Assembly (NCBI RefSeq): GCF_037042905.1
Contig: NC_087245.1
Location: 4,092,001-4,156,000 of the forward strand
Length of the DNA stretch: 64,000 bases
Source: Lytechinus pictus
Taxonomy: Eukaryota
Reading direction: 5' to 3'
A program made the position numbers and the translations under genes. Every line of letters starts with the position of its first letter. Position 1 is the stretch's first letter. This document shows, piece by piece, positions 3,470 to 56,349 of the stretch. Under the pieces are notes generated by a model that had not been told where the DNA came from, searched no databases, and saw only the letters and a list, made by a program, of their open reading frames with translations.

Positions 3470-4309
3470 ATGGCAAGACGAGGAGAAGAGGAAAATATTG
3501 AAATGGGGGTCATTGGAAACACATCTACTTCTGATGAAGGATTGGGCTGCTGTGGAATCATTCTTGCAATTGTGTCGATAATACTCGTGATTTGCACGCT
3601 ACCCCTTTCACTTTTTGTCTGCATAGTAGTGGTTCAGGAGTATGAGAGAGCAGTTATCTTTAGACTTGGACGTCTCTTGTCTGGTGGTGCTAAAGGTCCA
3701 GGTCTCTTCTTCATCCTACCTTGCATCGATGATTACAAAAAGGTAGATCTTCGCACCATTTCATTTGATATTCCTCCTCAAGAGATTCTGACCAGGGATA
3801 GTTTGACCATCTCTGTGGATGCTGTGGTCTTCTACCGTGTCAAGAATGCTACCATCAGCATCGCCAATGTGGAAAACGCAGACAAGTCCACCAGACTTCT
3901 GGCTCAGACGACACTTCGTAATGTCCTGGGCACCAAGAACCTAGCTGAGATTCTTGCAGAACGTGAAGGCATCAGTCACTACATGCAGTCCACCCTCGAC
4001 AATGACACCGACCCTTGGGGTATCTTAGTAGAGCGAGTTGAGATCAAAGATGTTCGTTTACCAGTCCAGCTCCAGAGAGCCATGGCTGCTGAAGCTGAAG
4101 CTTCCAGAGAGGCTAGGGCTAAGGTGATTGCTGCTGAAGGAGAACAGAATGCTGCTCGTGCTTTGAAGGAAGCTGCAGATACTATGGCTGAATCTCCATC
4201 GGCTCTTCAACTGAGGTACCTACAGACCCTTAACACCATCTCAGCCGAGAAGAACTCCACTATCATCTTTCCACTACCCATCGATCTCCTCAAAGGTATC
4301 CTAAAGTAA
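3470..4309 (+). CDS. Stomatin/band-7 (SPFH) family protein, paralog 1, single-exon CDS, 279 aa
   Basis: Cys motif (GCCG) and a hydrophobic hairpin with the conserved Pro (TLPLS), followed by VVQEYERAVIFRLGR, GPGLFFILPC, RLLAQTTLRNVLG and LQRAMAAEAEASREARAKVIAAEGE...LQLRYLQTL...IIFPLPID. Collinear with human stomatin and C. elegans MEC-2 as recalled. Confidence 0.96.
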   Translation: MARRGEEENIEMGVIGNTSTSDEGLGCCGIILAIVSIILVICTLPLSLFVCIVVVQEYERAVIFRLGRLLSGGAKGPGLFFILPCIDDYKKVDLRTISFDIPPQEILTRDSLTISVDAVVFYRVKNATISIANVENADKSTRLLAQTTLRNVLGTKNLAEILAEREGISHYMQSTLDNDTDPWGILVERVEIKDVRLPVQLQRAMAAEAEASREARAKVIAAEGEQNAARALKEAADTMAESPSALQLRYLQTLNTISAEKNSTIIFPLPIDLLKGILK

Positions 4310-5422
4310 ATATTAACCCAAACTGTTTCATAATCGGAGAAAATTAGGGATGTCGACAGTTGATGCTATTTGATTAATTTCGATACGGTTTTCGTAGAGT
4401 CAATACTTGTAGGTAGTTGTCCCATCCATCAATTAAGGATCTGTATATGACCAGCTTTGCTTGTGATTCAACTCCCAGCTACCGGTGTGATTGACAAGGT
4501 CAATGCAGATACAATGTGGCCCTCAAGTATTAGTCATCCCTTTGACGCTGACAAAATAAATTATTTAAAAATCTTGAAATAAAATATTCCACTAGAATTT
4601 GATATTTCAATATCTCATTAATAAGACTTTTGGAAGTGGTTGGTTGCCTTCATTCTTTATTGAATTAAAATACGCTTGTCATGCAAGATTTCTTATCTGT
4701 TCATCTGTACGTATACAAGTATGATTACCAATATTGTAGTTTACGCAATCCACTTTTCTGCCATCGTTAGAACGAAAATTCGATGATGATAATGTTGTTT
4801 AACAAGTTTATTGAAATTGTGATTACAGTTTACATTAATTATTCCTATAATTTTATTTATATCTATACATGTTGTGATAATCAAACTATTTTGTTTGTAT
4901 GAAGTGAATACTGAAGCCTTTTTCCAATTTCTGCTTACATTAAATGTTATTCTCGTATATAGGTGACCTGTTTGTTTTTTGTTTGACTGTCTTAATTTAT
5001 TCACGGTTTTATAAAAAACAATATACACAGACACAAGCCGTATAAAGGTGGTTTTCGACGAGGACGTGCAAGGAAAATTGATAATGATACAGACATTTTG
5101 ACCACTTTTTTGTTTGTTACTGAAGCATGAATGAATGTGTAGGCCATTCCACATGAACTCACTGAAGAGTGAATATATCATAAATATCATAAGGAAAAAG
5201 GAACCAATATATTGGTACATGTCTCTCATTTTGAAATAAAGGTGGATTAAGAAATCATCTGTCTGGATAATGACCATCAGATTAGTAAAGAGAAGATTGT
5301 CGTTTTGATAACTTATCTGGTTTAATATTTGACACCATATTGTACTTAAAATGATCCTAAAGTAACGGAAGTAAGGCGCTACAGTAAGCAGGGTGCTTTC
5401 ACATCCTATAATCTTTCATGTA

Positions 5423-5745
5423 AGCGCTGTGGTTTAGCGGTTCTGACTCCACCTTGTAATCAGAGGGTCGTGTATTCAAATCCCACCATGGACTAGCGAC
5501 CTTAGGCAAGGCGTCGATCCACACTTTGCAACTCTCACACATTAGGTATCGGTATAGGAAACAACAGTCACTCTCAACCCAGGTGCTAATTGGGTACCTG
5601 CAGGAAACAACTGTCATTGTGGTTGGTTCAGCAAGTGTGCGCCTATAACAGGCACTAAAGGAGCTATGAATCCAGTGACCGGATAATAGCTTTTAGTAGT
5701 CGTAGATTGATATCGCGCTATATAAAATCAAATTATTATTATATT
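5423..5745 (+). mobile_element. tRNA-derived SINE
   Basis: Box A-like tggtttagcgg, box B-like attcaaatccc, core ctcaacccaggtg...tgggtacc, and tail gcgctatataaa...(att)n. Confidence 0.8.
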
Positions 5746-6064
5746 AGAATGAGGCACAAAAGGGAAGAAAGAAGAAGAATATAAAGATAAAAGTTATGTG
5801 ACTTTATGTTACAGTTACCCCTGTTATTTGATTGAGAAAAAATATACCTCTTTCAGGTCATCTTTCCAACATATCAAAATATCATTATTCCACACCCCTT
5901 GCTTACCAAACATGACATTTTGCTAATCCCTATTTTATCTTTATCTTTGTATCTATACTATAAAGAACTAAAACGAGAAACCCTCAGCTATGCACACACA
6001 TTATTGGTATACTGGGTAGGAGCTTTATAGCAAAAAAAATTGGCATAAGCTACATGTACTAAAT

Positions 6065-6194
6065 NNNNNNNNNNNNNNNNNNNNNNNNNNNNNNNNNNNN
6101 NNNNNNNNNNNNNNNNNNNNNNNNNNNNNNNNNNNNNNNNNNNNNNNNNNNNNNNNNNNNNNNNNNNNNNNNNNNNNNNNNNNNNNNNNNNNNN
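6065..6194. other. Assembly gap
   Basis: Run of N. Confidence 0.99.
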
Positions 6195-8339
6195 ACAAAC
6201 ATTTTTTGTGCAAATTTAATTTCATTTATGATTAGTGATTGCGCGTTTGGCAGATTAGAATGTACAGTATATATGCTGTTTTATACTTGGAATATGAAAA
6301 CATACGAAATAATAATTATCAAAACAAAATATCATACCGTACTCATTTGTGTGTCATTGAACTAGTTGTCACCGTTATTTCATAGAGCTATTACTGTAAT
6401 AGCTCTATGGTTATTTATACACGTATGATGATAATCAAATGTGATTGCAGAATAAATTAAAAGAAGGGAGAAAGGGAGAAAGAGAGAATAGACGACAGAC
6501 ATGACAGAGAAGGAATGATCGAGGGACAGGATCTGTTAGCAACCGATCGAAAGGGAGAGAATCTGAGGGAGGCGTATCTGTGCATGTGGGTGCGAGCATG
6601 CGTGTGTATGTGGGGTGTGTTTGTGTTATACAGAGAGAGAGGTGATTGATTGATTGATTAAATCATACATTAGGTACATGATTAAATCAAGGTATCTTGA
6701 TAGAATTCACATTAATGCACCGTTTTAGCACAAAAGGAAAATTAATTTAAAATGCTGTGAGAGAGGGAGGCAAGCGAGCCAAAAATAACCTTTTGATACA
6801 TAATTCAATTTGTTGTGACGGATTTTGATATGTTTAAAACATATATGATATAAAAATCAGTTGCAAAAACTTGATTTATGTATTGAAAAAGCTATTTTGG
6901 CTCGCTCGCTTCCCTCGCTCATAGCATTTTAAAATCAATTTAGCCCTTTATGTCATGTCTTGCCCCTAAAACTTTAGACTCATTACGCCACTGACCTCCG
7001 CCCAAACTAAAAAAAAATAATAATCCCTCATAAGAGAACAAAACAGCCCCAACCATGAATGCCGATCGACACCCATGGCTGGCCAGTGTATATGCTACTA
7101 ATATAACGGTGGTTTACTTTGAATTCTATCAAGATAATTATGAAATATGGTGCTTTCAACATTTTGTAGATAGCGCTCTTTAATGTTGATGAACGAAAAG
7201 CAAATCAGAGAGCCGACCTCAATTGTGATGTTTGGGGTGCGATTGTGCAAAAACAAAATCACAGAGCGGAAAGTGTGTTGCGATTTGCTTTTCACGTTTT
7301 AAAAAACAGCACCACAGAGTTGAATTCCGTTTTTCCTTTTTCATGAATGAAAAAAAAACCCGACTTATCCATCCGTACCATGATTGGTTTAACATAAAGG
7401 GAAAGGGAGACAGGTACAGACAGAAAATCAGGAAGTATTCCACTTTAGGTACGAAATGTGCTACTGTAATTTTACATCTCACCCCGCATCTCACATTCTT
7501 TATAGTGTAGATGATCGGTGCAAAAATAGCAAGAATTTTTCAGATTATGGCACAAGCATGAAATTTGGCTGACAGGTAGAGTAAATTGTGCTGAACATTT
7601 TTAGCTGGGAGTGTCAACTTGATCTCTCCTCGTATAGCAACAGTTACTAGGTAACTTATTTACATTAGCAACCGCCAAATTTGGGGTGTTATCTCAATTT
7701 TAAAACTATATTTTGACTTCTAAGCGCCAATTTCACAATCACATATCAAGCAACATTCCAAACTTGTATAGCAACAGTTGCTTAGCAACCTATTTTCCAT
7801 ATAAACTATAGATGATATTCCTGAATACAACATCTGGACATGATATTTTTATGAGAATGGTTATAACATCGGTCAAAGTATGAAACTTGGAATTTAAAAA
7901 AATATATATCTCTTATATAAAAAGAACGTACATTTAATGTGTAGCACATGCCTTCTAAAATTTTGGCATATATTTTGTCAACAAATCAAGCGTGCAATTA
8001 TGCTCGACAAAGAATATTAGAGGCATCAGAGGAATACATCAAGAAAGTTACAGTCATCATCCTCTTCGATGGGAAGATGAATTTTTCATCAATCGAAGTG
8101 TAAGAAATATTTCTCCCCATAAGGACATTGTATTGCGAGACAAAGTGATAGTGCCATCAGCAGAATCATTTCCATCTGATTTGGACATGCCAAGAAGTAT
8201 TGGAGGCATATGGAAGGAAGAAGTATATCAGAACTTAATGATACTGTTCTGTGGCAGAGTATGGATCACGTCCAGCCAACATGGCCAACCTGATATTACA
8301 AGTGCTTCACCTGTATGTGACAAAGTCAGCTGCGCATAG

Positions 8340-8790
8340 TCCTGCAAGATCTTTAAAGTCATGATAGATCTTGAAGCTGCAAGATCCCATTCGAAACACC
8401 TGCAATCGGAACTGACAGGTCAAATCAACTTCTGCAAGAGCTCAAGTCATGATAGATCACGGATCTGCAGGATCCACGCCAACACGCCTGAAACAGAACT
8501 GACCGGTTCAAATAAACTCTTGCGAGATCTTTTACGTCATGATATATCCTAGAGCTGCAGGATTGATCCAGGTCAAAACACCTGGAATCGGAACTAACAG
8601 GTCCAAATTAACTTCTGCAGAAGTCACGATAGATCATGTAGCTGCAGGATCCAGGCAAACACACCTGGAAATTGAACTCAATGATCCAAATCAACTCTAA
8701 CAGATCTTTCACTTCATGATAGATCCCGGAGCTGCGCAGATGCAAGTCAAAACACCTGGAGACGGAACTGACAAGTCAAAATCATCTCCT
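8340..8790. repeat. Degenerate minisatellite, about 88-90-bp unit, about 5 copies
   Basis: tcatgatagatc...agctgcaggatc...aaacacctggaa...ggaactgacagg recurs near 8359, 8447, 8537, 8623 and 8713. Confidence 0.85.
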
Positions 8791-9737
8791 GTTCATAGCA
8801 TTAGGTCCCGGAACAGCATGGAGAACTTAATGATCTTCATTGCAGGCTACGGAAGGGAGGGGTAAAACCAACGCCTTTCAAGCGACCGACTACTACGTTA
8901 GCAAGGGATAAAATGGTATCCATGCAAGCACTCATTTGGAAATTACATTCTGGCGAAATTTTGATGTTTGAAATGATTTTAAACTAAGTTGACCGAATCA
9001 ATTCTTGGCGGTCATTCTTTCACCTGTCCAAGATCAGAGATGTTTAGGTTGTAAGATCCCATGACCTCCTGGTGAGCTCTTGTAATCGTTCTTTCTACAA
9101 TAGTGACCTCTGGCTAAAAGTTTATTTTGTAGAATTCTTTCCAAGGGCATTGTAAAGGTAAACAGGGTCTCAAAATAGTTTAATCGGGCCCCATTGGAAA
9201 ATAGATAGCCACAAATTTCCAGAATGTCAACGGTTCTAGACTTCTAATTCACGATGATACAAGTGTCAATCAATTTCACCCCTATTGTCAATCACTCAGA
9301 TAAGTAATCATGAGGTCTATTATCATTCAATGATAAGTACGTAACTATACAGTAATAACAAACATTAACAAATAACCCTTTACTATCATGACTATGAAAG
9401 ACACCAAATAATTTAATCAATGGATGATCTTGTACATAATTATGTTTAGGTTAATCCCCAATATATATGGTTTCCAAATGGAGAAAGATTGGTTTTAAGG
9501 TGAGTTTTCTAACATGCAACAAGTATCACTATGCCAATGATAATGGAACCCATAGACATCGTTTTCGGAAATATAAACCATATCATGAGGTAGTTAGATT
9601 TGTGCAAGATTTTACGTTTTTAAGCATCTACAAGTATTAGAAGCTCACATTAATCATCTTACCATACGGCCTTTCACAATCAGTTGCAGAAAACATGTTA
9701 CTTAGCAACCGGTCTTTATCATTGGCGGGTATACACG

Positions 9738-11843
9738 CATGGACCTGGAAAGCGGGGGTGCTGAAGCACCCCCAAGATTTTCCCAGGGGGTGCTGCGTGT
9801 ATTATTTTCCATATGCAGCACCCCCTGGAATTCTAGTTGTTGTGCCACATAAGAGAAATGTATGGAAAATGACCAAAATCTCGTATTGAAACCCCTTTTT
9901 TGGCTTATCAAATTTCTTGGCACCAAAACGACCTTCATTTTGTAGTGAAACCTTTTTGCTCGTCAAATAGGCATGGGCGAATCCAGGGAGCCTAAGGGAG
10001 TCCCTATTGGCGGAGCAAAAAAAAAAAAGGGGGGGGGGCATTTCAAAAAGAAAAAGAAGGGAAAAGAGAGGAGAAAATAAGAGGACGAAGAAGAGTGAAT
10101 AAAATAAGGTGAGGGACGACTTGGAAAATAAAACAAAAAACCTTTCATGTCACTATATAAAGTTTTCGCTCGTGCTTCGCATTCGCATTGCATGTTTGAT
10201 GAGGTAGGCCTACATGAGATTCTTCCTCATTAGGTTGATATGGAGCTTAAAATATCAAGTTGATGGCAATATACAAAACAAATTTTAGCTCCGACATCGA
10301 GCTTTCATTATTTTGTTTGAGTAATGAAATGATTTTCAAAAAAGGCTCTGTAAAATGTCCGTATTATTGTCTCAGTATCAACATTTTCAGCTCGAGCTGC
10401 GCGCTCGCGTTATTTTTTTGTCAGGTATTCTCAGTCTTCGTGTATTCCACAAAGTTATCAAAATATCCCTTTTCAGGTTTGATTGTCAAAACCTATCCGC
10501 CAGCGCTGTGCGCTAACATTTTGATTGTGACTAATGTATACCTTAATAATTTCCTCTATAATAATAAGCAATTCTATAAAAAAAACTATTTAAAATCCCC
10601 TTTCCATAACATCACGATTTGCGCTCTTATTAATTTGTTGAAATATATACATCAAACCATGCATCCTATTCATAATTACAAAAGTGCTTAAAATGTCCAG
10701 TTTTCAGGAAGTAATATCAACAAATTTCGAGCTGTCATTAGGCTTATTAGATAAATAAATACAAACATAACATTTTCATGAAGTCCTAATAATTAAATTG
10801 TCCTTTTTTAGAATAGAATATCTCACACTAAGGAAGAGGAATAGAAGAAAGTCATCATTTTCATATGATGCCGAAATGTCCTAAGAATGTCCAGGTCCTA
10901 GATCAAAATAAAAATAATAAAAATATCAGCTTGCGCTTCGCGCTCACATCATTTTTAAGAGCGATCCATAATATCCACTTCACAATTTTCCTACATAGTG
11001 CTTGAATTAGTGCTTAAATTGACCCTTTTTCAGATAGGAATATCAAATAATTTCAGTTCGCGCTTCGCGATCACATTATTGATTTTCATGATAAAAAATA
11101 CATTTAGAATGCCCAGATACTAGCTATAAATATTAAACACACGCACGCATGTTTATTGAGATACACAGTTTGTTTTTTATTCAAAACATTCTTAAATTAT
11201 CCAGTTTCAGACTACAATTTTCTGCTCGCGCTTCGCGCTCACATTATTGATTTAGGATACCTAATTACCTATTCTTTTCATGATTTACAAAACATGAATA
11301 GAGTAACCCGTTTTTAGGTCTAAATCTTTTTTTTTCCGCTCACGCTCGCATTATTTAGTTATATGCCTATAACAATGCCCATAATTATAAAATATGCTTA
11401 GAATTTCCATTTTTAGTTTGGAATGTCAAAAAATTTCAGCTCGCGCTTCTCGCTCGCTTTATTTGTTTATTGAATGTGTATCGCTTTAGAGCTAACTACA
11501 AGTTAACAGTCCTCAACACCCTTTTCGATCAGTTATATACGCATTTTGTTCAGGATCACAAACATTGCCCACAATGTTCGATTTTCAGGACAAGATTAGA
11601 TAGCGCTTCGCGCTCGCACTATTTAAATATGGCTTATGAGAGGATTACTATGTTTTATAAGAATAAAGCAAAGAAGTGACTCTTACGAAGAAACAAACAG
11701 ATATCTTCTCTGAGTGGCCGATCGGGGAAAATATGGGTGAAAATATTTTTTCGCCCCCCCCCCTTATTCGCGAAAGCTGGATCCGCCCCTGAATTTAGGC
11801 CTACTTCAGCACCCCCAGCCAAAAAATCGTTCCCAGGTCCCTG
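9738..11843. mobile_element. Composite non-autonomous hAT-like element containing a second element (about 9972-11791)
   Basis: Termini catggacctggaa...gggggtgctg / cagcaccccc...ttcccaggtccctg, with 8-bp TSD tatacacg/tatacatg. The inner element is bounded by catgggcgaatccag / ctggatccgcccctg. Confidence 0.75.
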
Positions 11844-12812
11844 TATACATGGTAATCCAGGGGCAGATCTAGGATTTTCCAGGGGGGCACATTTTTCCGA
11901 GGAAAAATTTGACAAGCAAAAAAAACAAAACGCTCTTTAAATCTGTATATACAACCCTATTTACTATAATTGTTAACCTTGCAGTAGTTGTTTAACAGTT
12001 TAAACAAACATGATTTTAAAACTTGGTTGTGTTTAAGATTTTAAACAATGGTGCAAAACTAAGAGTTGTATCCCAAAAATAATCAAGAAAGGACTTCTCC
12101 ATCTTTTGACGAGAGGACGTACCTGCGTGCTTGGTCTCCCTCGTCATCCCTTTTTAGGGGTAACGATATGGCATTTGTTGGGAATAACATCCATCTTATA
12201 ACCAGCTATATTTCATACTGAATAATTATATTTTATATATTAGTCTTTGATTAGCATCCGTCCTCTTTGGAATAAAATGCTCATGAACTTTACTCATTGT
12301 GTGACAGACTATTGATTTATTCTCATTTTGTAACACTAAACAATCACCACGCTACATATACATGTATATCTCAAGTGTTACACTGTTCAAACAACTTCAT
12401 AAGGTAAACAGCGTTGTATAAAAATCTTTTTTTTTGTGCGTGTACGAGTCGAGGGAGAAGAGGTACATTTAGGGGGCAGTGTGGCTCTGTGTGTGCTACG
12501 TTGGTAAATTGCCAATTCGTCCACTGCCCACTCGTCTACTCACCACATGGTCTACTTTCATTTAGTCTAATGCCATTCCATCTATCAACATTTCGTCAAA
12601 CAAGCATTTGATCCAATCATCACTTCGTCTAATTACCAGTTCGTTTATGACCATTTCGTCTCATAACCAGTCGGTCTAATATCCATTTCATTATCATTCA
12701 TTTTGCACAATTTACCACTTAGTCCAATTAGACCAAATGGTATATGGACTAAATGGCTATTAAACCTATACTGGTTATTAGACGGAATGGTATTAGACTG
12801 GATGAAAGTAGA

Positions 12813-14471
12813 CTTTCACACTGCATTTCCTTGACCCAATACTATCCTTAGCCCCAGTGGCGTAACTACGGGGGGGGGGGCATGGGGGGGGGGCACGTGC
12901 CCCCCCCCCCCCAATCGGCTGGCCAAAAAAAAAAAAAAAACGGGGAAAAGGAGAAAAGAGGGAGAAAGGAAGAGAAACGTAGTGGGGAAAGAAGAAATTA
13001 TAATGTTACATTATATTATGTTATGTTATATTACATAAGAAGCATTTTTTTCATAAATTTATGAAACATTATTTGCTCAGGGCATATGTCTTCATTGTAC
13101 TTGGTGCTCGCATAGTCTGTTTAACGAGATATATGATCCTGTTGTACTAAAACCTCCCGTTTTCAAATCAATATACACCAAATATATTTCCTCGCAATTC
13201 GAGTTATTATTGTTTTATGTAGTGACATTTACTTCTTTTTCTTGACTACTTTAAGTGATTGCCCAATTTTAAGGTCTTAATATAAAACATTTCCTGTCCG
13301 TGCTAACGTTCGCATTAGTTGATTGGTGAGATGTCTGCTCTTCATGAATTCTTAAAATCAGTCCTTATAATGTCAATTTTTCTGATCTGAATATCAAAAT
13401 TTTTCAGCTCGCGCTTCGCGCTCGCATCATTTGGTTAGTGAAATACGTACGGTCTTAGTGAATTCCTACAAACAAGCATTAGAATGCCCCTCTTCAGGTC
13501 TGAATTTCATAATATTTCAGCTCACGCTTCGCGCTCGCAGTATTTGATTAGTGAGATGCGTATGATAACCATGATTACAATGACTACAAAAAGTGCTTCA
13601 TGTGTTTAGATGTAATTCTAACAAAATCAGCAAAGGATGGCACTAGCATTAGATGACTATGCTGAGAGACTTATACTCTTAAAGGATACCTAAAATATAT
13701 AGTCCTTAAAATGTACCTGTTTGGGGTCAATATATACAAAAGTTTCAGCTCGCGCCTCGCGCTCGCATTGTTTGTTTAGCGAGACAGGTACGTATCACGA
13801 TTACAAAAAAATTGCTTATAATGTCCCTTTTAGTTCTGAATTATCAAAAAAAAATTAGCTCGCGCTTCGCGCTCGCATTATTTGGTAAGTGAGATACTTA
13901 TCCGTTAAATGACATTGCATGTCCTTAAAATGTCTCTATTAGATCAGTATACCTGGCAACTGAGCGCGCTTCGCGCGCTCCCTAAGTTACTTGAATTTTT
14001 TGCTGGTGCCCCCCCCCAATGCCGTGACCCACGGTACGCCACTGCTTAGCCCCATACAATACTATCTTTTGGGGGGTTTCACACTGTCTTCTTAACCCAT
14101 ACTATTTGCTAAACCCGGGTTAATTCCTTAACCCGCACAGCTAGCACAGCTCATGAATATTGATGATTTTGCCACACAGAGCGTGATTAACGTGCATTTT
14201 GACTTCTGTGATTGGCTGATGCTTAGCCCCACTTTTCCTGAGCCGGGTTTTGTTTCATACTGCACCTCTTAGCACCGCAATTCTGGTGCTAGCACCGCAA
14301 TTAGCCGGCTAACCCTGCTTTTTTGCAGGGCCAGATAGCACCGTACTATTTACCGTGCTAGCCCACTTTGCTTATACGTAGTGTGAAACCTAAATGAGCT
14401 AAGCTTTAACCCCGGGAAATTGGTGGGGCTAAGGGGGTGCGGGTTAAGGAAAGTATGTGCAGTGTGAAAAG
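12813..14471. mobile_element. Middle nested MITE with ctttcacactgca / tgcagtgtgaaaag ends
   Basis: Inverted termini and internal ttagccc/ttaaccc repeats. It is split by the insertion at 12855-14044. Confidence 0.6.
12855..14044. mobile_element. hAT-like non-autonomous element with a perfect 8-bp TSD
   Basis: TIR cagtggcgta / tacgccactg. TSD cttagccc at 12847-12854 and 14045-14052. Confidence 0.9.
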
Positions 14472-14552
14472 CATATAAGTGGTGAGTGGACGAACTGATG
14501 GTAGACTAAATGATAGTATAAACGATTTGGCAATTGGAAGAATTGAAAATAT

Positions 14553-38734: not shown

Positions 38735-40221
38735 CGTCACAGTCTCCTGGTTGGTTAAAAATGGAGGCACCAGCCTTTCTGCTATCTACAGGGAGAGGAA
38801 ATGTGTAGGCCTAATTAATGCACGACACGAGACGTAGCTATAGGTTATCTACTCTCTGAGTTAAATACACCTTGGACTTCATACGATAAACTGGTGATAA
38901 CAAACAGTTTAACTAGTATAATACACACCAAATGCCAACCATTTGAATTCCTTGTGCATTTGCGTCAACTTAATATTTATTCTGCTGAAATCCGCAGAGA
39001 GAGAGAGAGAGAAATGTGTGCCTGTAGTCGTGCTGGATACATACACGTGACTGAGAGTTCCGTCACGAGTGAATCCTGTTCGAGAGGAAAGATTAAGAAC
39101 ATTTGAATAAATTATGGCATGTTGCCAATAGTAACCCACACTGTTAAACGATTGTCGTGCGATCAACACCGAGGTCGAGGTCATGTACCATAGCCACCTC
39201 GCGTCAAGGGTATAATTGTCTGTGGGTTGGGGGGGGGGGGGGGCCGCGGGGACGGACAGCCCCATTCATCATGAGCGGTGCAAGTTTGCACCTGTCCATT
39301 GGGAGGGTGGTCAACTAGCCCTTGATTTGTATCTAACATAACAGTAAATACAATAAAAAAAATATATATTTGTTACCCCCTCCGCTATCAAAATACCGCG
39401 AAGCCGCTCCTGAATAGACCGACCTGTACTACTTACATTATCTTTAATTCAGTCTTTTAACCCACCAGCATTTTACAATTATGATTATCTGGAAGGCACA
39501 TATTGCAAAACACTATGGCATATGTTGATGGGATAATCCAATTTGAAAAAGATGGAAATTATGTTAGCGAAACTGAGGAGAAAGTAAGAATTTATAAAAC
39601 AAAACGAAACAAAACAGAATATTTATATGGTTTAAAAAATTAAGGAAGTACACTTTATTTTCATTGTACAAAACCAGGAACGATTCAAAATCTACCTTGA
39701 TACTCGATTTCGACACTTTATTATTTGAAAAAATATGACAAATAGTTTACTTTAAAACAAATTTTTTGTTCACATTCATCATGAGTAGCATAAATATAAA
39801 TTTCCCTATCATCAATCAAATCATCAATAAAAAAACACAGATTGAAAAAATTACAGACTTTTCCCCAATTTCTACACACGTAAGCCAACTATTTCGTTCA
39901 GCTGGAATTAACAAAAAACAGCATAATACATCTTTTAAAAAAATTAATTAACAACTTCATGAGATGATTACAAAAAATATATTAATCTCCGAATTCTATT
40001 ACAAATGGTTTTGTTGAAAATGACTTAATGAAAGACGTCATAACATTTATACTTATAATATCATTTTTCGAATAAAGTAAGCTTGTTATGTTAATGAATG
40101 GGGTTAATTGAGTTGATCAGCGATCAGTTCAATAGTGGGCACCTGTCATATCATTATATTTATGTCTTCAGAATTCAAATGTAAATTAAATAAACATTAT
40201 TTGTATCTTTGCTTTAGGCAA

Positions 40222-40455
40222 ACCAGTAGCCTGTAACACAAAGCATAGCAATTAATCATATTGATTTTCACAATTGATTGTACGTATATGCAATCAATTA
40301 TTGTAGGAAAAATGTACTACGATTGAGACCATGTTCCTGTAACACAAAGGTTAGCGATTAATTTTACGCTTGATTTTCACGATTGATTGTACATTGTAGT
40401 CAATGGAATCAATCGTAGAAAAACCATTGCTAAGCTTTGTGTTACCGGGCCCCTG
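40222..40455. mobile_element. Short MITE with an internally duplicated left end
   Basis: cctgtaacacaaag occurs twice (about 40230 and 40336) and is inverted as ctttgtgttaccgg at about 40435. Confidence 0.55.
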
Positions 40456-40984
40456 GAGTGTCATAATTATAGGAATCATTATTACATGTAATGTCTGTTC
40501 CCAATGGCGTACATATAGGGACTCGGTAATGGGGGAGGGGCTCCCCCTAAAAAAATCCGTCCTAAAATCATATTTTCATTTTAAAAAAGTAAATATTGCT
40601 CTCTCACTTCACTTGTACGCGACTATTTAGACAATTTATTTCCGTACGACATCTCTTTGCCCCCTCATCAATTCTTTTTGCTCATTACGCCTATATTAAC
40701 TAAGTTGTTGTATTTACAATAGTGAATAGAAATGGCTACCGTCTCCATGGGCAGTACATTGTCGATCAATGCTAATTAAGTAGGCCTAATGGATAAATAC
40801 TGTCGAGATGTAAGTCTATATGCAAATATGCCAGTAAATATCATTATAAATGAACTTTAGATACCGTTGTTTTTCTTTCAGCAATAGATTGCGAATTCTC
40901 AAGAAAGAAGACTAAAAATAGCGCGTATAATGATGAGAGTAAAAAAGCATGTCTAATTTAGTCATCCATTATTTTCTCCTTTTG

Positions 40985-42476
40985 ATTTGTCAGGTACCTA
41001 TTACGTTTGTGTATTCCATAAAGTTCGAAAAATATCCCTATTCGGGTCTGATTGCCAAAACGTAACAGCTAGAACTGCACGTGCATTTTGATTGGTGAGT
41101 TATGTATATTTCATTATTAATTCTATAAGAAACTACTTAAAATCCGCATTTCATGACAGTTTATCAAAAATTTCGGCTCGCGATTTGCGCTAGCATTAAT
41201 TGTTAAAAATATATTAACTCTTGCATCCTATTCATAACTACAAAAGTACTTGAAATGTTAAGTTTTCAGGCCATATTAACATATTTCGTGCTCTCAATGG
41301 GCTTGTTAGATTAATAAATAAATAAATAATATTTTAATTTCATAATTAAATTTTCCTTTTTTCAGAATGGAATATCGACAAGTTTCATCTCGCGTTTAGA
41401 AAAAGGGAAATGAAGATAGTCATCATTTTCATGTGATGACGAAATGTCCTAAGAATATCCCGATCCTATATGTCAAAACTCAAGTAATAATAATGAAAAG
41501 TATAAGCTATTTATTAAGAGCGATCCATATCCACCTCATAATTTTCCTACAAAGCGCTTGAAATATAGAGCTTAAATTGACACTTTTTCAGATCGGAATA
41601 TGAAATAATTTAAACTCGCGCTTCGTGCTCGCATTATTGATTTTCATGATAAAAAATGTATTTAGAGTGCCCAGATTCTATAGGTCTAAATCTGAAACAC
41701 GCACACCCATGTCTATTGAGATACGCAGCTTGTTCTCTATTTAAATGGTTATCCAGTTTCAGATCAGAATATCAAAAATGTTCTGCTCGCGCTTTGCGCC
41801 CGCATTATTAATGTAGGAAGATCCCCAATTACTCATCCTTTTCATGATTTACAAAACATGAAAAAGTGTCCCGTTTTTAGGTCCAAGTCTCGAATTTTTC
41901 GGCTCGCGCTTCGCGTTCGCATGCATCTGATTGTTTAGTTATATATCTATCCTGTTCACGATTACAAAAAGTGCTTAGAATTTCCAGTCTTTAGGTAGAA
42001 CTGTCACAAACTTTCAGCTCGCGCTTCGCGCTCGCATTATTTGATTGTTGAAATATGTAACGTCTTCATGGCTAACTGCAAGCAATCCTTAACAGGTCCC
42101 TTTTCGATCATGAGATCAAAACGTATATTAAAAATTTCTGCTCGCGCTTCGCGCTCGCATTTATTATTTAGTTGCATACAATGTTCAAATTTTAGGACAA
42201 GTGAGGTGTGAATATTACACCACTCTCGTTTCTGATTGTTGAGTTATATACCTATCCTGTTCACGATTACAATAGTGCTTAGAATTTCCAATCTTTAGGT
42301 AGAACTTTAAAAAATGTCAGAATAAAGCTAAAAAGTGACTATTAGGACTACCCCTTCAAAGAGACAAACAAAAATCAACTTCGAGCGGCCGATCGGCCGA
42401 TCGGGGAAAATTTGGCCGAAAAAAAATTCCGCCCCCCCCCCCCCCCCCCCATTGGCGAAGGCTGGATCCGCCCCTG
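40985..42476. mobile_element. Truncated copy of the GCGAAGC-motif element (homologous to about 10415-11791)
   Basis: Collinear with the 10.4-11.8 kb copy and ends in gctggatccgcccctg. Confidence 0.8.
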
Positions 42477-43010
42477 CTGGATATTACCATGTAGACTATA
42501 TTCCAATTATTATTGAGTTTCATGTAATACTGTCAATTTAAAGGAATCCTCGCTAATACGTTCCCATGAAATAAAAGTCTATTAATTTGAATTATTGCAA
42601 TCAAGCGAATTAGAAGTTAGCTGAAGAAATTAATCAACGAGCCTGAAATTCTAGACTAGCAGTGTGTTTTAAAACCAAGGACAATGCATACAAATCATAG
42701 CCGACTCTTTAGAAAGATACCCTACTCTTGCTATACACACGCACAAATTGTGAATAGGTTTTCACTCATATTTAATGAAGTAAGCTCTCTCTATAGTTAG
42801 CTTGCGCTAGCGCTACGATACGTACGTCGCCTTTACGGAGCTAGGAGCTTGCTAGCCTTGATCTATCGTGAATAGTGACAGAAATTTATCCATCATCACT
42901 TTGTAATCTGATATTCTACGGCTTTTTCTTATTTTCCCATATGCGTCGCTTGGTTGTTGTGGTAGAAGCAGTGTACATTCTACACAATACGAGTATCATC
43001 ATACGATCAT

Positions 43011-43919
43011 ATGAGCAACAATCGTGTGAATCCTGACAATTCGAGTCAAATTGAACTGATGGCGCAGAAACAGAGAAGCAACGATGGGCAGTGGCAAGCC
43101 CAACATGATGAACAAGGCATTATTGGAGCAAATACCGCAGACCATAGCATTGGTTGCTGCGGGGTGTTCCTCATGCTTATTTCGGTGTTACTAGTGATCT
43201 GCACGCTCCCATTTTCATTATTTATCTGCATAAAGGTGGTTCAGGAGTATGAAAGAGCAGTTATCTTTAGACTTGGGCGTCTCTTGTCTGGTGGTGCTAA
43301 AGGACCGGGTCTCTTCTTCATCCTACCTTGCATCGAGGATTACAGAAAGGTAGATCTTCGTACCATTTCGTTTGATATTCCTCCTCAAGAGATTCTGACC
43401 AGGGATAGCTTAACCATCTCTGTGGATGCTGTGGTCTTCTACCGTGTCAAGAATGCCACCGTCAGCATCGCCAATGTTGAAGACGCAGGCAGATCAACCA
43501 GACTTCTGGCTCAGACGACACTTCGTAATGTCCTCGGCACCAAGAATCTGTCGGAGGTCCTGGCAGAACGTGAAGGTATCAGTCACTACATGCAGTCCAC
43601 CCTCGACCATGACACCGACCCTTGGGGTATCCAAGTAGAGCGAGTTGAGATCAAGGATGTTCGTTTACCTGTCCAGCTCCAGAGAGCCATGGCTGCTGAA
43701 GCTGAAGCTTCCAGAGAGGCTAGGGCTAAGGTGATTGCTGCTGAAGGAGAGCAGAATGCTGCTCGTGCTTTGAAGGAAGCTGCAGATACTATTGCCGAAT
43801 CTCCATCGGCTCTTCAGCTGAGGTACCTCCAGACCCTCAACACCATTGCAGCAGAAAAGAATTCCACTATTATCTTTCCACTTCCTATTGATCTTATCAA
43901 TGGTGTTATGAAAAAGTAA
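43011..43919 (+). CDS. Stomatin/band-7 family protein, paralog 5, single-exon CDS, 302 aa with a longer N-terminus
   Basis: Intact ORF with SPFH motifs, divergently oriented to paralog 4. A second in-frame Met (MAQKQ) could be the true start. Confidence 0.95.
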   Translation: MSNNRVNPDNSSQIELMAQKQRSNDGQWQAQHDEQGIIGANTADHSIGCCGVFLMLISVLLVICTLPFSLFICIKVVQEYERAVIFRLGRLLSGGAKGPGLFFILPCIEDYRKVDLRTISFDIPPQEILTRDSLTISVDAVVFYRVKNATVSIANVEDAGRSTRLLAQTTLRNVLGTKNLSEVLAEREGISHYMQSTLDHDTDPWGIQVERVEIKDVRLPVQLQRAMAAEAEASREARAKVIAAEGEQNAARALKEAADTIAESPSALQLRYLQTLNTIAAEKNSTIIFPLPIDLINGVMKK

Positions 43920-51679: not shown

Positions 51680-52026
51680 GTGAGATTTGCTTACATTGTT
51701 CGTAGATTAAACTTGCTTCTTCCTTTTCTTCATTTTATGTGAATGCAGACAGAAGTAAGAAAGTATGAATAACTGCTGAACGGGATTAAGTGACAGACAG
51801 GCCGATCGATGAATTTTAGCTAGCGAGCAAAATCGATTCGCCAGGGATAAGTAGGTTAAAAAAAAAATTAAAATGCATTCTTCATTTCTTTGAAAAAAGT
51901 CATGTGACAAAATGACACATCTTTGTGATTTCTTTAAAATAACTAGTATCGCATGGGGCAACAGATCAGATACTTGCACAATGAGCTAATAATATTCATA
52001 TCAATTTCAATATCAATCCTAATGCA

Positions 52027-55000
52027 GATTCACCTTCAACAGAGCTCGCTACAACTGATCGAACGACTGATTCACCTTCAACAGAGCTCGCTACAACTGA
52101 TCTAACGACAGATTCACCTTCGACAGAGCTCGCTACAACTGATCAAACGACAGACTCACCTTCAACAGAGCTCGCTACAACTGATCTAACGACTGATTCA
52201 CCTTCGACAGAGCTCGATACAACTGATTTAACGACAGATTCACCTTCAACAGAGTTCGCTACTACTGATCTAACGACTGATTCACCTTCGACAGAGCTCG
52301 ATACAACTGATTTAACGACAGATTCACCTTCAACAGAGTTCGCTACTACTGATCTAACGACAGATTCACCTTCAACAGAGCTTGCTACAACCGATCTAAC
52401 GACAGACTCACCTTCAGCAGAGCTCGCTACAGTTACTGATTTAACGACAGACTCACCTTCAACAGAGCTCTCTTCAACTGATCTAACGACATATTTACCT
52501 TCAACAGAGCTCGCTACAACTGATCTAACGACAGATTCACCTTCAACAGAGCTCGCTAAAACTGATCTAATGACAGATTCACCTTCAACAGGTCTCGATA
52601 CAACTGATCAAACTACAGATTCACCTTCAACAGAGCTCGCTACAACTGATTTAACGACAGATTCACCTTCAACAGAGTTCGCTACAACTGATCAAACGAC
52701 AGACTCACCTTCAACAGAGCTCGATACAACTGATCAAACTACAGATTCACCTTCAACAGAGCTCGCTACAACTGATTTAACGACAGATTCACCTTCAACA
52801 GAGTTCGCTACAACTGATCAAACGACAGACTCACCTTCAACAGAGCTCGCTACAACTGATCTAACGACAGATTCACCTTCAACAGAGCTTGCTACAACTG
52901 ATCTTATGACAGATTCACCTTCGACAGAACTCGGTACAACTGATCTAACGACTGATTCACCTTCGACAGAGCTTGATACAACTGATTTAACGACAGATTC
53001 ACCTTCAACAGAGCTTGCTACAACTGATCTTATGACAGATTCACCTTCGACAGAGCTCGCTACAACTGATCTAACGACTGATTCACCTTCGACAGAGCTC
53101 GATACAACTGATTTAACGACAGATTCACCTTCAACAGAGTTCGCTACAACTGATCAAACGACAGACTCACCTTCAACAGAGCTCGCTACAACTGATCTAA
53201 CGACAGATTCACCTTCAACAGAGCTTGCTACAACTGATCTTATGACAGATTCACCTTCAACAGAGTTCGTTACAACTGATCTAACGACAGATTCACCTTC
53301 AACAGAGTTCGTTACAACTGATCAAACGACAGATTTACCTTCAACAGAGCTCGCTACAACTGATCAAACGACAGACTCACCTTCAACAGAGCTCGCTACA
53401 ACTGATCTAACGACAGATTCACCTTCAACAGAGCTTGCTACAACTGATCTTATGACAGATTCACCTTCGACAGAACTCGGTACAACTGATCTAACGACTG
53501 ATTCACCTTCAACAGAACTCGGTACAACTGATCTAACGACTGATTCACCTTCAACAGAGCTCGCTACAACTGATCTTATGACAGATTCACCTTCGACAGA
53601 ACTCGGTACAACTGATCTAACGACTGATTCACCTTCAACAGAACTCGGTACAACTGATCAAACGACAGACTCACCTTCAACAGAGCTCGCTACAACTGAT
53701 CTAACGACTGATTCACCTTCAACAGAGCTTGCTACAACTGATCTTATGACAGATTCACCTTCGACAGAACTCGGTACAACTGATCTAACGACTGATTCAC
53801 CTTCAACAGAACTCGGTACAACTGATCTAACGACTGATTCACCTTCGACAGAGCTTGATACAACTGATTTAACGACAGATTCACCTTCAACAGAGTTCGC
53901 TACTACTGATCAAACGACAGACTCACCTTCAACAGAGCTCGCTACAACTGATCTAACGACAGATTCACCTTCAACAGAGCTTGCTACAACTGATCTTATG
54001 ACAGATTCACCTTCAACAGAGTTCGTTACAACTGATCTAACGACAGATTCACCTTCAACAGAGTTCGTTACAACTGATCAAACGACAGATTTACCTTCAA
54101 CAGAGCTCGCTACAACTGATCTAACGACAGATTCACCTTCAACAGAGCTCGCTACAACTGATCAAACGACAGACTCACCTTCAACAGAGCTCGCTACAAC
54201 TGATCTAACGACTGATTCACCTTCAACAGAGCTTGCTACAACTGATCTTATGACAGATTCACCTTCAACAGTGTTCGCTACAACTGATCTAACGACAGAT
54301 TCACCTTCGACAGAGCTCGTTACAACTGATTTAACGACAGATTCACCTTCAACAGAGTTCGCTACAACTGATCTAACGACTGATTCACCTTCAACAGAGC
54401 TTGCTACAACTGATCTTATGACAGATTCACCTTCGACAGAACTCGGTACAACTGATCTAACGACTGATTCACCTTCAACAGAACTCGGTACAACTGATCT
54501 AACGACTGATTCACCTTCGACAGAGCTTGATACAACTGATTTAACGACAGATTCACCTTCAACAGAGTTCGCTACTACTGATCAAACGACAGACTCACCT
54601 TCAACAGAGCTCGCTACAACTGATCTAACGACAGATTCACCTTCAACAGAGCTTGCTACAACTGATCTTATGACAGATTCACCTTCAACAGAGTTCGTTA
54701 CAACTGATCTAACGACAGATTCACCTTCAACAGAGTTCGTTACAACTGATCAAACGACAGATTTACCTTCAACAGAGCTCGCTACAACTGATCTAACGAC
54801 AGATTCACCTTCAACAGAGCTCGCTACAACTGATCAAACGACAGATTCACCTTCGACAGAGCCCTCTACAACCGATCTAACGACTGATTCACCTTCAACA
54901 GAGCTCGCTTCACCTGGCCTAATGACAGATTCACCTTCAACAGAGCTCGCTACAACTTATCTATTGACAGATTCACCTTCAACAGAGCTCACTACAACTG

Positions 55001-55845
55001 ATCTAACGACAGATTCACCTTCGACAGTGCTCGCTACAACCGATCTAACGACACAATCACCTTCAACAGTGCTCGCTACATCTGATCTAATGACACAATC
55101 ACCTTCAACAGAGCTTGCTACAATTACTGATCTAACGACACATTCACCTTCATCAGAGCTCGCTACAACTGATCTAACGACTGATTTACTTTCAGCAGAG
55201 CTCGCTACAACTGATCTAACGACAGATTCACCTTCAACAGTGTTCGCTACAACTGATCTAACGACAGATTCACCTTCGACAGAGCTCGTTACAACTGATT
55301 TAACGACAGATTCACCTTCAACAGAGTTCGCTACAACTGATCTAACGACTGATTCACCTTCAACAGAGCTCGCTTCACCTGGCCTAATGACAGATTCACC
55401 TTCAACAGAGCTCGCTACAACTTATCTATTGACAGATTCACCTTCAACAGAGCTCGCTACAACTGACCTAATGACAGATTCACCTTCAACAGAGCTCGCT
55501 ACAACTGATCTAATGACAGATTCACCTTCAACAGAGCTCGCTACAACTGATCTAATGACAGATTCACCTTCAACAGAGCTCGCTACAACTGACCTAATGA
55601 CAGATTCACCTTCAACAGAGCTCGCTACAACTGATCGAACGACTGATTCACCTTCAACAGAGCTCGCTACAACTGATCTAACGACAGATTCACCTTCGAC
55701 AGAGCTCGTTACAACTTATCAAACGACTGATTCACCTTCAACAGGGTTCGATACAACTGATCAAACGACATTTTTAAATTCAACAGAGCCTGCTACAACT
55801 GATCTAACGACAGATTTACCTTCAACAGAGCTCGATATAACTGAT
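52027..55845 (+). repeat. Coding minisatellite, 42-bp unit (DSPSTELATTDLTT), about 90 copies
   Basis: Unit gattcaccttcaacagagctcgctacaactgatctaacgaca. The frame is preserved throughout; the only indels noticed are 3-bp insertions. Confidence 0.98.
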
Positions 55846-56349
55846 GTGCAATCGTCTGCAGAAAGCACTTCATCTACTCCAGATGTTTCAACATCCCTTA
55901 CAACTATCAATTTTCCAACAACCTATGGAACGACTGCTCTAACGTCAGAATCATCTGCAACTGAATTACGCACTTCACATACACAAAACCTAGGGACGAC
56001 TAAAGTCACATCACCGACTGAAATCACAGCAGTTGGTCCGGTCACAACTATGACAACAGAAAACAACACCCAAAGCGGCATGGTCCCTACTTTCAAATCA
56101 ATAGCTCATGAAACAGGAAAGTCATTTGTGTTACTTCATGTTAATTATTCTGTTTCATCAGTCGATGTACTTTCTACTCATGAAATGATTCAGACACGAA
56201 TCCGATGTGCATCAAAGTGCAGTGGATTATCCGAGTGTTATGCTTTCACCTACTCCCACATAACTCAAGAATGTTTGGTCGGAAGAAACGTTAGTTATCA
56301 GAGCCTGCATGGAACCAGTGGTATTACGTATAGAAAAATAGACCTGTAG
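52028..56349 (+). CDS. Terminal exon: acidic Thr/Ser-rich mucin-like repeat plus C-terminal PAN/apple-like domain
   Basis: Acceptor aatgcAG ends at 52027, and G+AT rebuilds the first Asp of DSPST. The exon is in frame with track ORF 52570..56349. The C-terminus CASKCSGLSECYAFTYSHITQECLVG has the PAN-like C-x3-C-x5-C-x-AF-x-Y...C spacing. Confidence 0.88.

Follow-up and report, generated by a model that had tools for sequence, protein, structure and literature searches.

Five intronless stomatin genes in both orientations

A 64,000-nucleotide stretch of the Lytechinus pictus genome (contig NC_087245.1, positions 4,092,001 to 4,156,000 of the forward strand; hereafter the window, whose own numbering we use) carries five intronless stomatin genes, S1 to S5, placed in both orientations within about 40 kb. 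Each contains a core of ~660 nucleotides that encodes the SPFH domain and the helical region after it, and over the 657 nucleotides of this core the five copies are 89.8–95.4% identical. Comparison with two other sea urchins demonstrates concerted evolution of the core, the boundaries of that core and at least one exchange tract with a readable direction. The five genes, each recognized from its open reading frame (ORF) and a match to Pfam Band_7, are:

3470-4309, plus strand: S1, intronless stomatin gene, 279 amino acids; homogenised core 3629-4285
21163-22017, minus strand: S2, intronless stomatin gene, 284 amino acids; core 21190-21846
27490-28341, minus strand: S3, intronless stomatin gene, 283 amino acids; core 27517-28173
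37877-38734, minus strand: S4, intronless stomatin gene, 285 amino acids from the first ATG; core 37904-38560
43011-43919, plus strand: S5, intronless stomatin gene, 302 amino acids; core 43236-43892

All five intact ORFs match PF01145 (Band_7) with E values of about 1e-37 to 1e-39 and scores of 130–134 bits against a gathering cut-off of 23.6, and nearly the entire profile is covered in every protein. A hydrophobic stretch of ~29 residues with a conserved Pro stands just before VVQEYER in all copies, and the best named relatives, 73–89% identical, include sea-urchin proteins annotated as ‘stomatin-like’ or ‘band 7 protein AGAP004871-like’ as well as ‘MEC2-like’ ones. The predicted architecture is thus that of a stomatin, with a short N-terminus, a hydrophobic hairpin, the SPFH domain and a helical C-terminal region. 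In the mechanical ORF list S4 begins at a GTG at 38770, and we use its first ATG; stranded RNA reads put the first mate on the plus strand, in agreement with the minus-strand location of the gene. Elsewhere in the genome, a sixth intronless copy, unlinked to the cluster, lies on contig C16 (8492787-8493614), and intron-bearing stomatin genes that match exon by exon lie on contig C15 (about 0.87–0.89 Mb and 14.30–14.32 Mb). A retrocopy may be the origin of the intronless genes.

Similarity between the five genes is confined to part of their length. The proportion of synonymous differences (pS) between window paralogs is 0.17–0.31 in the core, with a minimum of about 0.10 at core positions 406–585, versus a saturated 0.5–0.9 in the N-terminal and hairpin part, and it rises again in the last codons. 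The transitions are sharp: pS drops from 0.68 to 0.20 within ~90 nucleotides around the start of VVQEYE and climbs after PLPID. In S. purpuratus (Strongylocentrotus purpuratus) the homogenised segment is longer, reaching into the hairpin and through the tail. The C-terminal tails and untranslated regions (UTRs) of the window genes are locus-specific, and a blastn search with word size 7 found no similarity between the 1.5-kb flanks of different copies. An original prediction, made from the letters of the window alone, had described paralogs with dissimilar 5′ ends and flanks whose synonymous divergence should vary along the gene; these flanks, the saturated N-terminal sites and the pS profile agree with that description. 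Between orthologs, the ratio of nonsynonymous to synonymous differences (pN/pS) in the N-termini is about 0.4, which would fit selection for locus-specific N-termini.

Within the most homogenised part of the core, two genes of opposite orientation, S1 and S2, have a stretch of 220 bp in which only one base, 4063, separates them:

4002-4221, plus strand: S1 side of the S1/S2 stretch, from sequence comparison
21254-21473, minus strand: S2 side of the S1/S2 stretch, inverted relative to S1

The original prediction had singled out about 200 bp of this near-identity, and S1 4021-4220 does match the reverse complement of S2 21255-21454 with that one difference, although the S2 side had been placed one base out of register. 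Its diagnostic groupings are likewise present in the alignment: NVENADKST in S1 and S2 versus NVEDAGRST in S4 and S5 (S3 has NVENADNST); LDNDT in S1 and S4 versus LDHDT in S2, S3 and S5; WGILV in S1 and S2 versus WGIQV in S3, S4 and S5; tail codons that pair S1 with S4 and S2 with S5; and an N-terminal MAS.GKDD together with a C-terminal GIMTK in both S2 and S4. As a record of recent exchange, however, several of these groupings fail. NVEDAGRST of S4 and S5 occurs in both L. variegatus (Lytechinus variegatus) and S. purpuratus, and NVENADKST and WGILV of S1 and S2 occur in L. variegatus, so these states reflect either events before the split of the Lytechinus species or shared ancestry.

Orthologous arrays, an unlinked copy and a polarised tract

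Our comparison set consisted of the five cluster genes of L. variegatus and at least six of S. purpuratus (AAGJ06000007.1). The L. variegatus array has the same five genes in the same order and orientation as the window, and the flanks of each window gene align only to those of its positional counterpart, at 78–88% identity, with the S1 flanks orthologous to locus L012. The S. purpuratus cluster shows the same N-terminal types in the same order in at least six intronless genes, including an extra S1-like copy, Sp_Z, beside Sp_S1 (N-terminal pS 0.25); this count is a lower bound, as about 15 kb between loci L019 and L018 were left out. The array with its five loci predates the split between Lytechinus and Strongylocentrotus about 30–50 Myr ago, the age that has been given for the divergence of L. 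variegatus and S. purpuratus (PMC12521550). The comparison genes with coordinates are:

L. variegatus L017, 16156-17010: ortholog of S2
L. variegatus L017, 10001-10852: ortholog of S3
L. variegatus L013, 10001-10858: ortholog of S4
L. variegatus L013, 2359-3267: ortholog of S5
S. purpuratus AAGJ06000007.1 (L018), 3874-4710 and 18066-18926: cluster genes
S. purpuratus AAGJ06000007.1 (L019), 17626-18561: cluster gene

Two of the S. purpuratus cluster genes are absent from the gene calls listed for that contig. On L. variegatus CM031015.1, a second, partial cluster (S5, S4, S3) lies at about 92.02–92.04 Mb (L014, L016), ~790 kb from the first (L013, L015, L017; about 91.23–91.26 Mb). Core pS between the two is 0.00 for S4, 0.02 for S5 and 0.08 for S3, and their spacing differs; the second cluster could be a haplotype left uncollapsed or a segmental duplication of recent date. 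At the Gln/Leu codon by which S1 and S2 are marked, its S3 and that of the first cluster disagree, which may reflect a conversion that is still segregating.

The two parts of the gene have different histories. A tree of the N-terminal and hairpin part groups the genes by locus (S3 with Sp_X, support 99/98; S5 with Sp_S5, 96/98), whereas in the core tree the Lytechinus copies and the S. purpuratus copies are completely separated. By approximately unbiased (AU) tests, no orthologous clade is compatible with the core (p from 2e-7 to 5e-3), and the N-terminal part is likewise incompatible with species clades (p = 1.7e-38 and 9e-5). Clustering by locus at the N-terminus and by lineage in the core had been foreseen for sister species, and at the level of genera this is what the trees contain. 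Within Lytechinus, the expectation that cores should cluster by species holds only in part: S1 and S2 are intermixed, and S3, S4 and S5 still pair by locus.

Individual sites can be sorted in the same way. Quartets made of two loci from L. pictus and S. purpuratus contain, per locus pair, 18–33 core sites that group by species, 0–9 that follow orthology and 0–2 with the cross pattern, and core pS is 0.12–0.31 within a genome versus 0.30–0.42 between genera whatever the locus. Between L. pictus and L. variegatus, most core sites follow orthology (6–38 per pair), and distinct species-pattern sites number 18 versus seven cross-pattern sites (p = 0.04); in the S1/S2 quartet, with six orthology, four species and three cross sites, the loci are only slightly differentiated. 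Some states are confined to one lineage and spread over several of its loci. GCT at core 561 occurs in window S1–S4 but is missing from every L. variegatus and S. purpuratus copy; all five L. variegatus copies have ATT (Ile) at core 558, with ATG elsewhere except in S5; and a two-base change from CAA to TTA (Leu) is present in S1 and S2 of both Lytechinus species, where every S. purpuratus copy has CAA.

The unlinked C16 copy provides a control for how fast such a core diverges on its own. Its orthology with L. variegatus and S. purpuratus is one-to-one, no exchange with the cluster is seen, and its protein is similarly conserved; relative to the cluster, its core has a nonsynonymous divergence (pN) of about 0.05 and a pS of 0.59–0.69. 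Because synonymous sites of C16 approach saturation despite the conserved protein, the core is free to diverge, and synonymous constraint is not what keeps the cluster copies alike. Core pS between C16 orthologs is 0.093 for the two Lytechinus species and 0.43–0.45 between Lytechinus and S. purpuratus; at core 406–585 the C16 orthologs stand at 0.42–0.51 versus 0.08–0.16 between cluster paralogs in each of the three genomes. Although the cluster paralogs predate the split of the genera, they coalesce after it. Between L. pictus and L. variegatus, cluster orthologs have a core pS of 0.163, above both the 0.093 of C16 (Fisher p = 0.02) and the 0.090 of the cluster’s own N-termini (p = 0.008), as would be expected if conversion imports differences from paralogs.

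In one case, the direction of exchange can be read. S1 and S4 are 34 kb apart and inverted relative to each other, and they correspond as follows:

4246-4292, plus strand: donor stretch in S1, core 618–664, with states common to S1 of L. pictus and L. variegatus
37897-37943, minus strand: recipient tract in S4, core 618–664 (outer bounds core 604–668), from sequence comparison

Eight of the nine differences between the S4 tract and L. variegatus S4 give identity with S1 of both Lytechinus species. The tract thus carries the S1 state and departs from its own ortholog, which makes S1 the donor and S4 the recipient: about 47 bp of S1 passed into the inverted S4 on the branch leading to L. pictus. 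At 37943 (core 618), three of four RNA reads of one run show a non-S1 state, one of several alternative letters in S4 described below.

Recombination statistics, for which we used our own implementations, agree once more copies are included. The pairwise homoplasy index (PHI) test is significant for the ten Lytechinus genes (p = 0.0002), for a set of 16 genes (p = 0.0008) and in S. purpuratus (p = 0.014). A GENECONV-like permutation test identifies a 229-bp fragment common to Lv_S4 and Lv_S5 in L. variegatus (global p about 0.03) and, as the only globally significant fragment among the five window copies, an identical S2–S3 fragment at core 279–330 that spans 14 polymorphic sites (global p about 0.003):

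21517-21568, minus strand: S2 side of the S2–S3 fragment, with species-pattern sites at core 291 and 330
27844-27895, minus strand: S3 side of the S2–S3 fragment

In S. purpuratus, three neighbouring copies have the same tail. With tracts or signals in L. pictus, L. variegatus and S. purpuratus, conversion is recurrent in all three lineages, but it has been slow, patchy and episodic since L. pictus and L. variegatus split. The wider proposal, that old duplicates are homogenised by conversion restricted to the conserved domain with inverted copies taking part, is borne out by the cross-species data.

Probable domain-restricted conversion and its alternatives

We regard it as very probable that interlocus gene conversion restricted to one domain maintains the cores of this cluster. 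The five genes would be old tandem and inverted duplicates of one intronless stomatin gene, with the core repeatedly overwritten by non-reciprocal, short-tract conversion between copies, including those in opposite orientations. Conversion would halt at the edges of the core where the N-terminal and hairpin region, the last codons and the flanks are presumably too diverged for heteroduplex formation. Purifying selection on the N-termini would in addition remove conversions that overwrite them, and constraint on the core protein could preserve enough identity for further conversion, making the process self-sustaining. Because several copies are inverted, unequal crossing-over could not homogenise them without inverting the array.

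Several observations weigh against this model or limit the evidence for it. First, the five window copies taken by themselves are equivocal. Permutation tests with PHI and the neighbour similarity score (NSS) on these five are not significant (p 0.3–0.5), with incompatible sites showing no clustering along the gene, and in a run-length test that allows no mismatch neither is the 220-bp identity of S1 and S2, because few sites there vary in any copy. Second, noncoding divergence between L. pictus and L. variegatus, at 12–20% with indels, is close to the core pS of the cluster orthologs, so the elevation of that pS is only suggestive, and the excess of species-pattern over cross-pattern sites between these species is modest, with locus pairs that are not independent. 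Third, C16 itself has a lower pS in its core (0.43) than in its N-terminus (0.70) between genera, so part of the contrast between N-terminus and core in the cluster is intrinsic. Fourth, a footprint of GC-biased conversion was not found: GC content at third codon positions (GC3) is 0.47 in the cores of all Lytechinus cluster genes, compared with 0.62–0.65 in C16 and 0.36–0.41 in the N-termini of S1–S4. Such a footprint is frequent in gene conversion, but it is not obligatory. Finally, the short-read contigs end within the core and cannot confirm phase over its length, for which the evidence is the assembly itself and its agreement with L. variegatus.

The incompatible site partitions on which the original prediction was largely built illustrate how little five sequences can settle. 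Of the pairs of informative sites, 51% are mutually incompatible. Every one of the ten 2|3 splits that can exist is present when the tail is included, eight of them inside the 657-nucleotide core. Parametric simulation on the best tree without recombination nevertheless yields about seven distinct splits, so that the observed count is not unusual. Homoplastic informative sites, by contrast, number 18 versus 8.8 in the simulations (P = 0.004). The claim that the partitions do not fit a single duplication tree therefore survives in the excess of homoplasy but not in the number of splits or in PHI and NSS, and the recombination signal that had been expected emerges from the GENECONV-like fragments and, for PHI, once L. 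variegatus is added. Incompatible partitions among five sequences are weak evidence alone, since many splits are expected from a star-like tree; from the window by itself, conversion is plausible but not demonstrated.

If sequence is being transferred between the copies, reverse-transcribed mRNA might serve as the repair template in place of DNA–DNA heteroduplex, with the same outcome. The absence of introns from all six family members, together with the exon-by-exon match of the C15 genes, suggests a retrogene origin and gives this route some appeal. The tracts, however, are short and internal (about 50–230 bp) and come without the 3′ UTR or tail of a donor, in keeping with tails and UTRs in the window that stay locus-specific. 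Proximity suffices for ectopic conversion between DNA copies, and the unlinked C16 gene takes no part, a limit that diffusible cDNA would not obviously respect. We consider cDNA-templated repair improbable.

An explanation with no exchange at all, in which protein constraint, codon usage or RNA structure at synonymous sites and recurrent mutation on a star-like tree produce both the similarity and the mosaic, fares worse still and is in our judgement very unlikely. It can draw on the stomatin core’s protein identity of about 78% even to molluscs and amphioxus, on the non-significant PHI for the five copies, on the ability of a near-star tree with strong rate heterogeneity alone to yield about seven of ten splits, and on a C16 core pS somewhat below that of the C16 N-terminus. 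Against this, C16, a gene of the same genome with a similarly conserved protein, differs from the cluster at a pS of 0.6, and its orthologs in different genera differ more than cluster paralogs within one genome. Nor can constraint group cores by genus against orthology, or explain lineage-specific states common to four or five loci. We also considered a compositional shift between the genera as the cause; the shift in GC3, 0.47 versus 0.53, was judged too small to give 18–33 identical parallel changes per locus pair.

Gene turnover, by birth and death or by unequal crossing-over, would make the cores alike simply because the copies are young. Some turnover does occur, as the extra Sp_Z in S. 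purpuratus and the second, partial cluster in L. variegatus indicate. Young whole-gene copies, however, would not have dissimilar flanks or saturated synonymous sites in their N-termini, and flanks, N-termini, gene order and orientation correspond one-to-one with L. variegatus, with N-terminal types that match those of S. purpuratus. Unequal crossing-over has the further difficulty that it cannot homogenise inverted members while the orientation of the array is kept. Turnover as the source of core similarity thus has, in our estimation, very little chance of being correct.

The least probable alternative is that the mosaic arose in assembly, through consensus mixing or mis-joining of paralogs or haplotypes. 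Long identical stretches of core do break short-read graphs, the L. variegatus assembly has a probable uncollapsed second copy, and the window contains two gaps:

6065-6194: assembly gap, intergenic, 1.75 kb 3′ of S1
25585-26379: assembly gap, intergenic, between S2 and S3

Both gaps, however, are at least 1.1 kb from any ORF, and their two sides are colinear in order and orientation with the independently assembled L. variegatus locus, at similar spacing. Most locus-specific core states of the window recur in the L. variegatus orthologs. In S4, contigs of three runs from two studies that span 37454-37922 connect the 3′ UTR with the 3′ portion of the S1-like tract (37897-37922); two of the runs show no differences, and the third has one other letter and two inserted bases. 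Contigs also run from the 5′ UTR of S4 into the start of its core (38513-39070). Separately deposited NCBI proteins of L. pictus, P0009 and P0018, differ from S1 and S3 by one and two residues, respectively, and keep their motif combinations.

Alternative letters are also seen in S4. At window positions 37943, 37967, 38060, 38099 and 38141, all in its core, raw RNA reads of run X21 carry other letters (from 3 of 4 to 16 of 16 reads), and those at 38060 and 38099 recur in Logan contigs of other runs, at 38099 in three of three. The individual that was assembled may carry the rarer allele at 38099. The alternative letters could stem from allelic variation in S4, with one allele lacking the S1-like state at core 618, or from reads of paralogs that were cross-mapped.

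Outside the stomatin genes, an inverted repeated element lies between members of the cluster at 23921-24599 and 34613-35180, where ORF translations from opposite strands contain a long, near-identical peptide (GGGGHSTKKVVGVCRGRDKKRGPWSGLIVK...). ORF translations at 11655-11915 and 18464-18787 have the motif QGPGNDFL.GGA in common. Positions 52001-56000 differ from the remaining window in GC skew (–0.32 to –0.34), with a positive AT skew and a GC content of 0.43, which suggests a strand-biased repeat or satellite.

Relation to known systems

Interlocus conversion is a textbook process, familiar from the primate gamma-globin genes, the inverted Hsp70 pairs of Drosophila and RHD/RHCE. The stomatin cluster resembles such cases in three respects. 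First, its paralogs arose before speciation, but within a lineage they resemble each other more closely than orthologs from different lineages do. Second, it has a mosaic signal, short tracts and a sharp drop in identity at the edge of the homogenised segment. Finally, exchange takes place between inverted copies without rearrangement of the array. By contrast, the pace is slow, with most sites still following orthology after roughly 10% neutral divergence, and there is no enrichment in GC3. The mechanism is known, and the cluster reveals no new one; with stomatin/SPFH as the family and camarodont sea urchins as the host we found no earlier report, as literature searches on stomatin with gene conversion or concerted evolution returned nothing relevant.

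More broadly, the cluster offers a compact, well-bounded example of domain-restricted concerted evolution, in a structure kept for roughly 30–50 Myr across model sea urchins with good genomes. In a very heterozygous animal, the array could serve for estimates of how long conversion tracts are, how often ectopic conversion happens and in which direction. There is also a practical consequence for echinoderm annotation: core-based trees misassign stomatin orthology, whereas N-termini and flanks assign it correctly.

The sea-urchin papers on conversion that our searches found concern the Sp185/333 (SpTransformer) genes of S. purpuratus, a clustered family for which exchange between members, by gene conversion or recombination, has been discussed (for example PMC3091723, PMC8634487). 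For that family, the emphasis is on diversification of immune effectors, on repeats and on mosaics of elements, whereas in the stomatin cluster conversion preserves a conserved, housekeeping-type domain. Unlike in Sp185/333, the variable part of the stomatin genes, the N-terminus, is the part that is not converted.

A different parallel lies in stomatins with alternative first exons. In computational annotations of Haliotis cracherodii (P0044-P0049) and Diadema antillarum (P0023/P0024), the isoforms of one stomatin gene have an identical core and vary solely in the peptide N-terminal to the hairpin (alignment A1). The product repertoire is similar to that of the window, in that a variable cytoplasmic N-terminal peptide is joined to a common SPFH core. 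The genetic basis differs: a single gene makes the core identical by construction in those animals, whereas in L. pictus five intronless genes have cores kept 90–95% alike by conversion. It is a doubtful idea that the cluster is the multi-gene equivalent of such a gene, with conversion favoured or tolerated only in the core because an interchangeable SPFH/oligomerisation core allows mixed ring complexes; that conversion is favoured for the sake of this repertoire is speculation. Were the idea true, the need for subunits to match would fall on the most homogenised segment, at about core 406–585 in the helical region that follows the SPFH domain.

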